Made by a program: the position numbers and the translations under genes | The notes under the pieces: model-generated | Database searches by the model: none | What the model was told of the DNA's origin: nothing | What the model saw: the letters and a program-made list of their open reading frames with translations, nothing else | In this document: one piece after another, positions 1 through 4,400 of the stretch | How positions within the stretch are numbered: the stretch's first letter is position 1 | Layout: every line of letters begins with the position of its first letter | Source: Macrostomum lignano | Taxonomy: Eukaryota | Direction: 5' to 3' | Assembly (NCBI GenBank): GCA_002269645.1 | Contig: NIVC01003063.1 | Location: 23,539 to 87,538 of the forward strand | DNA: 64,000 bases

Positions 1-1445
1 TCTGCTTGTGAAACCTGAGCAAAAGGGTGTTTTTGTGATGATTGTGTTATTTTCGGAAAGGAAATATTAATTTCTTTAATAAACCACTTACCCGACTCTG
101 TGACATCATCCAGATTCTCGTAATTGATATCAGTGAGTTTTCTCATTTCCCAAACGAAAGACAGACCTGAAAACTTTGTGCCACAGTTTTCTGTGCAATC
201 CGCTAGGTAAACCAAAGGAATTGAGCCTCGAACCCTCTCGGCACAGTTGCTAACACATCTGAAAATCAGATGAGCACGTTGAACCTCCTCATAGAACAAA
301 AATCATGATTATTCGGACAGATACCAATCAATAGATGAAAAATTCTTACAAAATTCTCACAGACGCCCGTCTCTGAGGCGAAATAAATATTTTCCAATCA
401 GCAATGGCGCCGCGCATATCCTTTGACAAAATAACACGGATCAAGTACGTCTTATTGGGAAGCATGTGAAAGGTACTAAGCATTAACGTAGCCATCTCGT
501 TCTGCTCCATGAAGATTCCAATGCCGTTTCCAAAGCAGCCGGAGTATCCTTCCAGATCTTGGCTCACAGGAATGCTAATCCGAGTTGCGACATTGTCAGG
601 AAGTGACGGCAGCTCCGCCTCCTGCAGACAAATCCAGCGAAACGCCATGCCCGTCAGATTCCCATCCTCCACGTCCCAGTCCCGAGGCGACAGCTCCAGC
701 CTGACAGTTTCGTTGTAGGCAGCGGAGGCCTGTGTTGACTCATTGTTGAAGCTCAGCGTCAGAGGTGTCTCCGTGATTTTGAGGAAAAACGCGAACTCTG
801 CAGACACCGGAGGCGTCACGGCAAACATGGATAGGTTGAGTACAATCTTGTACAGACCATACCAGAGTGTGCGGTTGGGAACCTGCAGCAGAAATGAGTT
901 ACCGAGACCCAGGCTGACTTCAGCTCCGGCTGCATTCAGAACTCGCCAGCGCCAATACGTGTTGCTTGTCTTCGTGCAGTTTAGCTCCGGAAGACCCTCA
1001 ACGACGATCTCCTGGGACCTCATCAGCTGCAGAGGCCTCTCGGGATCCCACTGGGTCAGAATCCGACCAGCATGAGAAAAGTTCAGCTTTGGTTTGTCGC
1101 ACATCCAGTCGAGTATAATTGCCAGAGTTTCGGCTGTGTCGTTGCTGACATGGTTGAATGCTAGCAGAGAAGCCGAGAAGCCACCAAGACTTGGATAAAC
1201 GTGAGAAAACGAAAACGACGTGTTATTGTAACCAATCTCAGTAAAATTGATGCCGTGACTATCAGAGTAGGGCTGACACAAAAATGGAATGCCAAAGCTG
1301 ATCGATGTAGAGTCTCCAAAATCTACGACAAAACAGCTGTTTGTGCCGAATCTGGTGATGTTTAAGAAGAAGAAAGTCGCGTTCGATAAGAAGGCCGAAC
1401 CGTTCGTTTTGAAGCTTCCGACTATGACAGCATCGAGCACAATGT
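1..1445 (-). CDS. Copy A REJ-module exons (~353-1445, 92-258 and 1-14)
   Basis: The 364-aa ORF is highly similar to copy B 43791-44890 (LVVDFGD, WRWRVL...LLQVPNRTLWYGLYKIVL, DWDVEDG...FRWIC). Exon 92-258 is 167 nt, the same length as copy B 43124-43290. Confidence 0.9.
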
Positions 1446-4400
1446 CTACAGAGATCGGAAGCGTTTGGAAGGAGGTGTCACGTGACTCTTGTTTTCAAAA
1501 AGCTTTATCTAAATATTTAAATCAGCAACTAGACTCACCGACGGGAAACCCGAGGACTCCAACTCTGACCCGAGCGTCTCCATGGAAGCTGAGTGGTGAC
1601 AGCACCAGGAACTTTGCGATAACAGGGTTCGGAAGATCCTCCATAAACATTGTTTCGTAGATGATGGAGTTCAGCAATGTCTTATTCAGAATACTTGTCC
1701 TGGGCACCTCCTGCAGCTGGGAGTCGTCATGAGTTCCATAGTGCAGTCTGTACTGATTCAAACAAGATCCATTGAACCCAGCAGTGACAATGGAAAACAC
1801 TCGATGAGGAACCGGGAATGTGATGCGGACGGAGGCATTCACTGGGAGCTCAAAGGCTGAGTCGCTACTCAGCAGCAGGGCGGCAGGCCCGCGTTCCCAG
1901 CTCGCACTGGAGGGCTGGCTCACCGTGACCTGGTGCGGCGCCACCGGCACGAGGGGCGCCTCAGCCAGCGACTCAGGAGTGCAGCCGAACAGCTCAAATT
2001 TTCCGGCGAACCGACCAACCACTCGCAGAGGGTGGATGCGGAAATGGCGGCCGATGACAGGGTTGGGTAGTTGCTCGATCGAGGTAATGCAGCTGTTTGG
2101 GTAGTCCGCAGGTCCGTGCAGAACCTGTGTAATGTTTGTGGAAAGTGGTCTACGAAACTACATATAGTAGCAACAACAACAAAGTGCTTTTGGTTGCCTA
2201 AGCGCAAAACCTACAGATGAAGCCGAGCCCCAGAAACGCTCGTTGCGGGAGTACATCAGTACGTAGGCCACAGTCGCCTCTCTGGCAAGTCCTTGCAGAC
2301 AATAAATGCCCGACATTGCCACAGCTCGCACTGTTGCCTCCTCCTGGAAATTCACTTGAAGCCACTCGTCGATGCCTGTGCTTTCCGCCCTGAAGAACCC
2401 GAAGGTCCCGACCGAAGCAGCTGGAGTAAAAAAACAAAATAATAGAAATCTTATTTTTGACTTTGCAGGAAACTAAATCCGAAGGAACATCGCTGAGACG
2501 ATGGTAAATTGAAAAGGACTTTTACAAAGAATATAGTTTTTGTTTAAAACTGTTAAAACACTTAAATTTTCTGGCACTCATCATAGTGTGACGTTGTCAA
2601 TTTTAGTAGCCCCGCCAAGGGCCGTTTCGACATACGGTACCAATCCATAATATTGTTAATTTAATGGTCCCGTTCTCTCACGTCTGCTTAAAGTAGCGAC
2701 CAAAGAATTTTAAATAACTCGCGTACGTTTGTAAGCCTAAGTACAGTAGGCGATCGATAATTTCTGTTTTTCTCGCCGGCCAATAGCAAAGCCGCGCATA
2801 AATTATGTTAGCTTGAAATTAAGTTCTCCGCGCGCACCCACCCCCCAGCCCACTCTTTATCAGTCCTGTCTGGCTGGGGCGCTCGGGGTTAGGCTCCCTT
2901 TCTCTCTCATTTTTACTCTCCTCTCTGGCTCCTTGCTTTTGTTTACTCGTTAGCCAGCCTTAGGCCCTTGCCACCCCGGCACTCTGTGTTTGCTTGCCTT
3001 TCTCTCTCCGCCTTATTCCGCCACCACACGTTCATTGCCATTACACCGTTACCATTGCCTCAGGCTCACCGACCCACTCTATTGCCTACCAGAATTTATT
3101 TATCTTATTGTTGTGTAGCCGCCAGTGCATTCCTTCGGATTCAGCAATTCCTCTGCCCTATCTCTGTTGACCGCTCAGACGGAACTGATAATAGCAAGCC
3201 AACTATTCTCTTATATTGTTACAATAAACCAGTCTGCGGCCATTGCCCGCATCAGTTGCATTATCATCAAGTGCTACCGCTACAAACTTTGCCTCCGCCG
3301 TGTTGTCTTCGAAATCATTTTCGAGTCTTTATAGCTATTTTTATAGCTATAAACCGACGTTTAAAATTGGCCTTGTTATAGATTTTAGGTTACAAATGCA
3401 GTATTCCCACAACTATTCCCATATCCTATTGTCAAAGAACGAAAAAGCGAATTGACACGACTCAGAGTCAAACGCGCTTCAGAAGACTTTCAACAATTTT
3501 TTGCTTTTCATATCGCATCTTGACCCGCTTCTGCTGCTGACGTGAGGCTGGGTCAGGTTAACAGAAATCTTTGCATCAGCTTTAGATATGCAAGCTTAAT
3601 ATTTACCCTGTAAATTTAATCCGAAAGCAACGTTCTGAGGTGGATATCCAGGCAGGCTGGACTTTGCCGTGATGCTGGACACTGGCACCGTGACGTTGTC
3701 GTCTGGGTCAGGGCTCAGCAGCGGGCTTTCGCAGTTTGCGACTGAAATGGGGTGGCTTTTCGCTCAGAATATGTAAAGCGAATTCATGAAGCTGAATCAG
3801 TCACGACTTGCTAAGTCTGTTACCGTAGCAACGCCATCGGAAAGAGCTCATTAGTTTAGCTGACACGGTCTGAGCTGCAGCCTCAGCTGCCGCGGTGACC
3901 GTGTCGCTGACGATGGCAACATGGTTTCCCAGCACTACGGCAGTGCAGTTTCCAGTTTCGTTTCGTTGGCAGTCAGCCATTGGCTTAAGCATCGGATCAG
4001 ATATAGAGTACACGCCGATGGGATTTGCCACCACTGGACTTAGAGCGGTCGTAAATAGCTTCGAGTCGCAGGAGTTTCCTGTGATGGTTATTTTTACAGT
4101 ATTTTGAGTTTCAGTCATTGGCACTTGCTATAATACGAACTACGAGCTATATTTCACTGAGTTTTGATCGATAACCGTGATCTGAACACTCACCAGGTGC
4201 GGCTGGCACCTCACAGATGAACGGAAAGACGGCAGTTTCGCTGTCGCAAGGCACGGTGGACCACTGCATTCTCTCACCTACCTCCGATACCACGCAGCCG
4301 CTGGTTGCACTGCTAGGCTGCCTCCAGTTGTTCAGATGGGCTGACAGGGGCCTGCCGTCGGAGGTTTCAAAGCTGCCGCTGGCGTTGCTGAACTCGCCAT

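Follow-up and report, generated by a model that had tools for sequence, protein, structure and literature searches.

The activation of a cryptic 3' splice site after genomic deletion of the authentic acceptor is established in disease genetics. Intronization denotes the conversion of exonic sequence to intron (PMC2740785, PMC3565874, PMC9612004). Here we describe a possible natural counterpart of both in the flatworm Macrostomum lignano, in a stretch of 64,000 nucleotides (nt) of contig NIVC01003063.1 (assembly GCA_002269645.1, positions 23,539 to 87,538 of the forward strand), hereafter referred to as the window. It carries two tandem receptor gene copies, A and B, on the minus strand. Copy A has lost a 6.8-kb segment that copy B retains, and 29 nt of formerly coding sequence at the edge of the deletion may now provide the 3' end of an intron.

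As in intronization, copy A would remove by splicing a sequence that is coding both ancestrally and in the paralogue. In contrast to intronization, just 29 nt would be concerned, as a by-product of a large deletion that took the natural acceptor, and no new splice signals arose inside an exon that stayed intact. The locus resembles cryptic 3' splice site activation in its intact upstream donor and in the position of the next usable AG within a former exon, but the outcome in copy A would preserve the frame and might represent a fixed, functional state instead of a disease allele. Overall the event combines known processes, i.e. deletion, cryptic acceptor use (a small intronization), gene conversion and pseudogenisation, and it is a tidy example rather than a new kind of event.

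According to BLASTN, by which the first 12 kb of the window were compared with the remainder, copies A and B are collinear tandem paralogues, copy A spanning about 13,350 down to 1 and continuing past the window edge, and copy B spanning 64,000 down to about 37,470. Based on their predicted domains both are polycystin-1/REJ-type (PKD1/REJ-like) receptor genes. The REJ domain (Pfam PF02010) was detected in copy A at 349-1494 (E=5e-14), in the homologous exon of copy B (E=1e-11) and, as the next REJ part, at 42569-43165 in copy B (E=6.5e-17). As in the polycystin-1/PKDREJ/sea-urchin REJ family, REJ is preceded by PKD repeats (PF00801, E=4.7e-14 at 44958-47978 of copy B) and by lectin-type N-terminal modules. 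Furthermore, REJ is followed in copy B by the multi-pass C-terminal part of the polycystin-1 family, a Polycystin domain (PF20519, E=7e-24) and a PKD cation-channel domain (PF08016, E=1e-14) at 37473-39113; the 3' part of copy A lies outside the window. The channel exon of copy B is 95% identical to a UniRef protein of M. lignano (P0004), and another paralogue of this species (PAA69298.1, P0006; 36% identical) has the layout PKD, REJ, channel. The genes differ from the polycystin-1 family in their N-terminal set, which is lineage-specific (F5/8-like, CLECT-like, fibrinogen-related), and copy A differs furthermore by being without the PKD array.

The discoidin-type exons are best called F5/8-like, as three consistent matches to F5/8 type C (PF00754) reached 18 bits against a gathering cut-off of 28.2. 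A weak precomputed PF00754 match exists for a relative (P0063), and almost no relatives of these exons were found by HMMER among 1.8 billion representative proteins. Rfam gave no match within the window.

The preliminary description of this stretch, which was made from the letters alone, had proposed the loss of a ~7-kb module from copy A, and this observation proved correct to the base. Positions 455-1474 of copy A correspond to 43900-44919 of copy B (95.2% identity, BLASTN) and positions 1527-2127 to 51742-52342 (87.9%). The B-only segment between them (44920-51741, minus strand) comprises 6,822 nt that are absent in copy A, where they are replaced by 52 nt of unalignable filler (1475-1526, minus strand). 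In copy B the segment contains exons of CLECT-like, fibrinogen-related and EB/EGF-like type, PKD-like repeats amounting to about 1,000 codons, and an intron largely occupied by a 36-nt minisatellite. The CLECT, FReD (fibrinogen-related), EGF and PKD content attributed to it earlier is partly borne out by Pfam, which identified the PKD repeats and Fibrinogen_C (48319-48849, E=1.4e-5) and gave a weak EB/EGF-like match at 47994-48230; the CLECT of the B-only module had no Pfam match and is visible as motifs only.

Upstream of the filler, the exon at 1539-2124 of copy A (minus strand) encodes the end of one F5/8-type-C-like domain and the whole of a second. It begins after the acceptor CACAG at 2125, has an open frame, is 87.9% identical to B 51754-52342 and ends with ...VGVLGFPV plus one G, i.e. 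in phase 1. Downstream of the filler lies a remnant of 29 nt, CTCCTTCCAAACGCTTCCGATCTCTGTAG (1474-1446, minus strand), which is identical at 29 of 29 positions to 44919-44891 of copy B, the exact match extending over 35 nt (A 1474-1440; E=6e-15 within the window). In copy B the remnant belongs to a long open frame and encodes SFQTLPISV, the final beta-strand of a PKD domain; as had been suggested, the 3' end of the deletion falls inside a PKD domain, and according to the contiguous frames of relatives in its last strand.

The following exon of copy A (350-1445, minus strand) is open over 365 codons, 49% identical to a homologous protein (P0001) and encodes one PKD-like domain and the first half of REJ; its ratio of non-synonymous to synonymous divergence (dN/dS) against copy B is 0.23-0.30. 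The PKD-like unit has a PF00801 match below the cut-off (E=0.0015), corresponds in alignments to the PKD unit found in P0001 and P0002, and is recognised by the motifs CFVVDFGD and HVYPSLGGFSASLLAFNHVSND, or by HVYP..G.F.A.L.AFNHVSND. The earlier statement that the whole PKD stalk was lost accordingly applies to the PKD array, which is gone, and not to this domain, which is retained beside REJ. The next exon (92-258, minus strand; CVSNCAERV...FVWEMRKL...) is also open and conserves Cys and Trp residues in comparison with a distant relative.

Comparison with relatives polarised the difference between the two copies as a loss in copy A. In P0001, P0002, seven metagenomic loci (L004-L012), P0089, P0094, P0042 and P0006 the last PKD strand continues directly into the REJ exon, with the consensus ...F.(K/R)SAIG..T..VNCSNLVSWQ..ET.V(D/E)^I(I/V/L)(L/F)D.VI... 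(^ marking the boundary) and without stop or intron. Since about a dozen relatives share this contiguous PKD-to-REJ frame, the interpretation that copy A lost the module, with no gain in copy B, is well supported. A HMMER search with the spliced junction of copy A gave 253 matches (E up to 0.001). Among the 150 listed nearly all begin at query residue ~190-197, which corresponds to the junction, and none has an F5/8 exon joined to REJ. Word-index and HMMER searches of the protein collections revealed no protein or transcript of the same species across the junction and no match above 49% identity. In the relative P0063 (locus L016; 34% identical, same sample as P0001) the homologous F5/8 exon ends with ...LGFPV and GTT G^GTGAGT, which indicates that the position and phase of the donor are ancient.

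Several of these relatives are animal PKD/REJ receptor exons in metagenome contigs, L001 and L016 originating from sample 3300040801 of the Joint Genome Institute (JGI) and L002-L013 from the metagenome JAAUYG01. One such exon has been deposited as a protein of a "Kangiellaceae bacterium" metagenome-assembled genome (MEE4247216.1), which points to host or eukaryote contamination of that genome.

The donor of the second F5/8-like exon is conserved between the two copies and lies in phase 1 in both. It reads GGG TTT CCC GTC G^GTGAGT in copy A (GT at 1538-1537) and GGG TTT CCT GTA G^GTAAGT in copy B (GT at 51753-51752, minus strand), where it is joined to ...CTACAG^AT TGC CCT (D-CPVNF...) near 50490. 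The sequence confirms that the donor of copy A is 93 nt away from the REJ exon. These 93 nt (1446-1538, minus strand) constitute the proposed intron, which consists of the GTGAGT donor, the 52-nt filler and the 29-nt formerly coding remnant ending in TAG. Joining 1539 to 1445 (1539^1445) would remove a multiple of three nucleotides and restore G^AC, the Asp codon used by copy B, to give ...VGVLGFPV-D-IVLDAVIV...; the in-frame arithmetic of the preliminary description was correct. The sequence thus combines a coding ancestral state with a bounding, frame-preserving GT...AG pair in phase 1 on both sides. The unspliced reading meets in-frame TGA codons at 1524-1522 and 1497-1495, by which read-through is ruled out.

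The strength of the splice signals was assessed by position weight matrices built from 20 introns of copy A, using 889 AGs in the region as background. The donor at 1538 reached 10.2 bits, i.e. more than every cross-validated donor in the gene (maximum 10.0). For the acceptor at 1446 the score was 1.8 bits, and three of the 20 real acceptors scored lower. Plausible branch sites (tgAc/tcAc) are present in the filler 33-38 nt before AG 1446, and a length of 93 nt is typical of copy A, in which introns are mostly 59-200 nt long (e.g. 74 nt at 8618-8545 and 90 nt at 2214-2125). Acceptor 1446 is mediocre to ordinary, and the signal strength permits the proposed splice and does not single out this AG.

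Copy A, the one that carries the deletion, is also the copy that looks maintained. Frame-consistent GT-AG introns can be placed between all its 25 conserved coding blocks, and every block (~2,265 codons in total) is without stop or frameshift. Copy B, in contrast, is an unprocessed pseudogene, its reading frame being disrupted by five frameshifts and by two nonsense codons. Its coding exons contain five 1-nt deletions near 63380, 63316, 61147, 58383 and 58177 (span 58177-63381, minus strand), and copy A is open at each homologous place. The first two are located in the N-terminal CLECT exon, and the one near 63380 disrupts the frame of the conserved GWFWFDG motif. An in-frame TGA at 44957-44955 (minus strand), which had escaped the preliminary description, replaces a Gly codon invariant in relatives (AIGxxN...VNCSN) only 12 codons upstream of the remnant, and an in-frame TAG at 43182-43184 (minus strand) stands in place of a Trp found in copy A (152-150) and in a distant relative. 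Two mini-introns that would remove the TGA were considered and rejected: GTGATT...TTTAG would be just 18 nt long, and GTGATT...GTAG (68 nt) would shift the frame into an open reading frame (ORF) ending at 44686.

Six of the lesions affect shared exons and one the B-only part. Under equal exposure of both copies the probability that all six shared-exon lesions fall in copy B is ~0.016, which also speaks against assembly errors having arisen at random; some of the indels, however, lie in 2-3-nt homopolymers and may be assembly errors. With at least seven disabling lesions at conserved positions and its intron-exon structure kept, copy B cannot serve as the intact reference for which it had been taken. 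It resembles a duplicated pseudogene that exchanges sequence with a functional tandem paralogue, being disabled despite its introns and full architecture, but it differs from this pattern in that the dead copy holds the ancestral, complete domain set. In the REJ exon, polarised with P0001 and P0002, three derived amino acid changes were assigned to copy A and ten to copy B.

Another feature of such an exchanging pair is the uneven divergence along the two genes. The synonymous divergence (dS) per exon swings from about 0 (A 8541-7800) to more than 1.4 (e.g. A 2442-2215), and the overall A/B dN/dS is 0.27. Within the REJ exon the mismatch density jumps from ~4% to ~39% at A 500, so that A 500-1474 forms a high-identity conversion tract (about 96%), which ends where the A/B homology ends. 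The exon at 258-92, on the other hand, has a dS of about 2.2 against copy B (measured over A 272-84) and was not refreshed by conversion. Along the collinear genes, near-identical stretches alternate abruptly with deeply diverged ones, a pattern characteristic of gene conversion, and copies A and B seem to be old paralogues that were repeatedly patched in this way, including exchange with a pseudogene.

As the remnant is part of the conversion tract, its perfect identity was rejected as a means of dating the deletion. This identity results from conversion, or from a deletion that occurred later within the converted tract. The view of the locus as a direct snapshot, which would imply a recent event, is weakened accordingly.

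Taken together, the following course of events may be proposed. In the lineage of copy A a deletion extended from the intron after the second F5/8-like exon into the final PKD repeat of the array, as far as its last beta-strand, by which the old, strong phase-1 donor at 1538 came to lie 93 nt from the first suitably placed in-phase AG at 1446. The 29-nt coding remnant would have become the polypyrimidine tract and AG, with the branch site in the filler. Splicing would connect the end of one domain (..LGFPV) with the beginning of another (DIVLDAVIV..), and the orphan beta-strand would be lost; the F5/8-like Pfam match reaches position 116 of the 127 of the profile, 14 residues short of the exon end. 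The predicted product would consist of N-terminal lectin and discoidin-like domains, F5/8, one PKD-like domain, REJ and the parts beyond, and would be a receptor without the PKD array and without the CLECT-like, fibrinogen-related and EB/EGF-like modules of the B-only segment. Of the earlier interpretation the loss in copy A, the break in a PKD strand and the in-phase AG are retained here, and the intact copy B, the loss of the whole stalk and the snapshot are not.

Based on the frame logic and the integrity of copy A we give an even chance to a rescue by splicing at AG 1446. Open and conserved downstream exons in copy A are what a productive junction predicts. In this respect the exon at 258-92 is a better argument than the REJ exon, being anciently diverged from copy B and yet open with its Cys/Trp pattern kept.

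A number of observations weigh against such a rescue. As many as 20% of the 889 AGs score at least as well as acceptor 1446, which is a TAG while 18 of the 20 real acceptors are CAG, and an out-of-frame AG at 1352, 94 nt beyond AG 1446, scores 7.7 bits. The open REJ exon of copy A is weak evidence, since the tract 500-1474 is shared with copy B and the REJ exon of copy B is open too. The deletion is undatable, and the intact downstream exons could simply reflect a recent event. Furthermore, the integrity of copy A holds for the blocks within the window, the rest of the gene lying beyond it. An AlphaFold2 model of the spliced product was uninformative (mean predicted local distance difference test score, pLDDT, of 37; 6-row alignment), as only the PKD-like part beginning ~5 residues past the junction reached a pLDDT of 55-76, which is too weak for use.

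The explanation that survives best besides rescue at AG 1446 is a deletion that went unrescued. The 93 nt would then be retained and the protein would end with ...GFPVGESSC before the first stop as a truncated secreted lectin/discoidin, or splicing would shift the frame; in either case the REJ half would have been orphaned recently, surviving as a remnant that is undecayed as yet or has been refreshed by conversion from copy B. The mediocre acceptor, the stronger AG at 1352, the two in-frame stops within the 93 nt, the undatable deletion and the position of the junction REJ exon in a conversion tract, with dead copy B's version open as well, are all consistent with this explanation. However, exon 258-92 remained open with its conserved residues although it was not refreshed, derived changes in the REJ exon are fewer in copy A than in copy B, and the canonical AATAAA is absent from the retained stretch. 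We regard an unrescued deletion, in both its parts taken jointly, as rather unlikely.

A rescue by another in-frame acceptor seems less probable still. Splicing at AG 1422 (117-nt intron) would yield ...GFPV-V-GSFKTNG, and splicing at AG 1488 (51-nt intron) ...GFPV-E-SRDTSFQTLPISVDIVLD, and alternative isoforms are conceivable, as all three AGs are in phase with open frames and AG 1422 (0.4 bits) scores close to AG 1446. Yet the tract of AG 1488 is purine-rich (-7.0 bits) and its intron would be shorter than any other inferred in the gene, and AG 1446 is the first AG past a plausible branch site and pyrimidine tract.

An assembly artefact, in which the real copy A has the module and a collapse or chimeric join removed it from the contig, is improbable. 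M. lignano is a hidden-polyploid flatworm whose PacBio-based assemblies are difficult and redundant (PMC5730564), its genome is rich in repeats, and copies A and B share stretches of 95-99% identity. Nevertheless, the junction lies outside shared repeats and is flanked by 52 nt unique within the window, the window contains no N runs, and the two flanks differ in their divergence from copy B (dS 0.30 and 0.13), which fits a real, separate locus. The reversed polarity, in which copy A is ancestral and copy B gained the module by insertion, draws on the bare A/B difference alone and is highly improbable, since the 3' boundary lies inside a PKD domain whose last strand enters the REJ exon in every relative examined, copy A retains 29 nt of this strand, and no outgroup with F5/8 directly before REJ was found among the HMMER matches listed (150 of 253).

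If the junction 1539^1445 is used, the locus would document at sequence resolution how a deletion turned exon sequence into the 3' end of an intron, and the ancestral and derived states can both be seen at a distance of 50 kb from each other. A large extracellular array (CLECT, FReD, EGF-like and ~1,000 PKD residues) would then also be shown to be dispensable in a REJ-type receptor. Going one step further, copy A may represent a fixed functional domain-loss allele, i.e. a fused F5/8-REJ, shortened receptor kept by selection while its full-length paralogue decayed; we put this forward tentatively and with less confidence than the splice itself. If true, it would be a natural case of receptor remodelling by deletion and intronization within the fast-evolving PKD1/REJ family of a hermaphroditic flatworm. 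With regard to annotation, it is the copy with the full domain set that is the pseudogene, the short copy A being the likely functional gene, and automated models templated on copy B would be wrong.

The filler at 1475-1526 is unique to copy A. A short-word BLAST search for a counterpart in copy B or elsewhere in the window gave chance matches only. The best of these, a 12-nt match to 45896-45885 of copy B, the palindrome AGTCACGTGACA inside a GSHVTY PKD motif, was rejected as its origin because the match does not extend. The filler contains a perfect 10-nt palindrome, GTCACGTGAC (1486-1477), which includes the E-box CACGTG. A distance of 2 nt separates it from the deletion junction, and it may have been left by repair or have arisen by chance.

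The 36-nt minisatellite of the B-only segment (50768-51723; 26.6 copies, 96% matches) makes up most of the intron of copy B after the F5/8 exon, and no trace of it was found in copy A. Further tandem arrays were detected in the window at 14747-15321 (24-nt unit x24, the source of long PRITALDK-type ORFs), at 17763-18049 ((CTAA)x72) and at 31006-31360 (20-nt unit x18). In addition, an intron of copy A contains two 65-nt arrays in opposite orientation (6242-6748).

A third, very divergent paralogue, copy C, was detected on the minus strand at 19006-29313. It is collinear with the N-terminal CLECT and other exons of copies A and B, to which it shows an amino acid identity of 25-45%, and its PKD/REJ part was not detected between 13.4 and 19 kb. 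Within the copy C region an ORF at 22610-22894 (minus strand) is predicted to encode a HTH_38/Tc3-transposase-type helix-turn-helix (E=5e-7) and is probably the remnant of a Tc1/mariner-like element.

The first CLECT exon (12953-13252 in copy A, 63700-63999 in copy B) has a non-coding frame that is open over 100 codons in both copies, which indicates that the long ORFs in this region are not all coding. The true CLECT frame of this exon (CPAGFTPHGDICLHFG...) is 98% identical between copies A and B.

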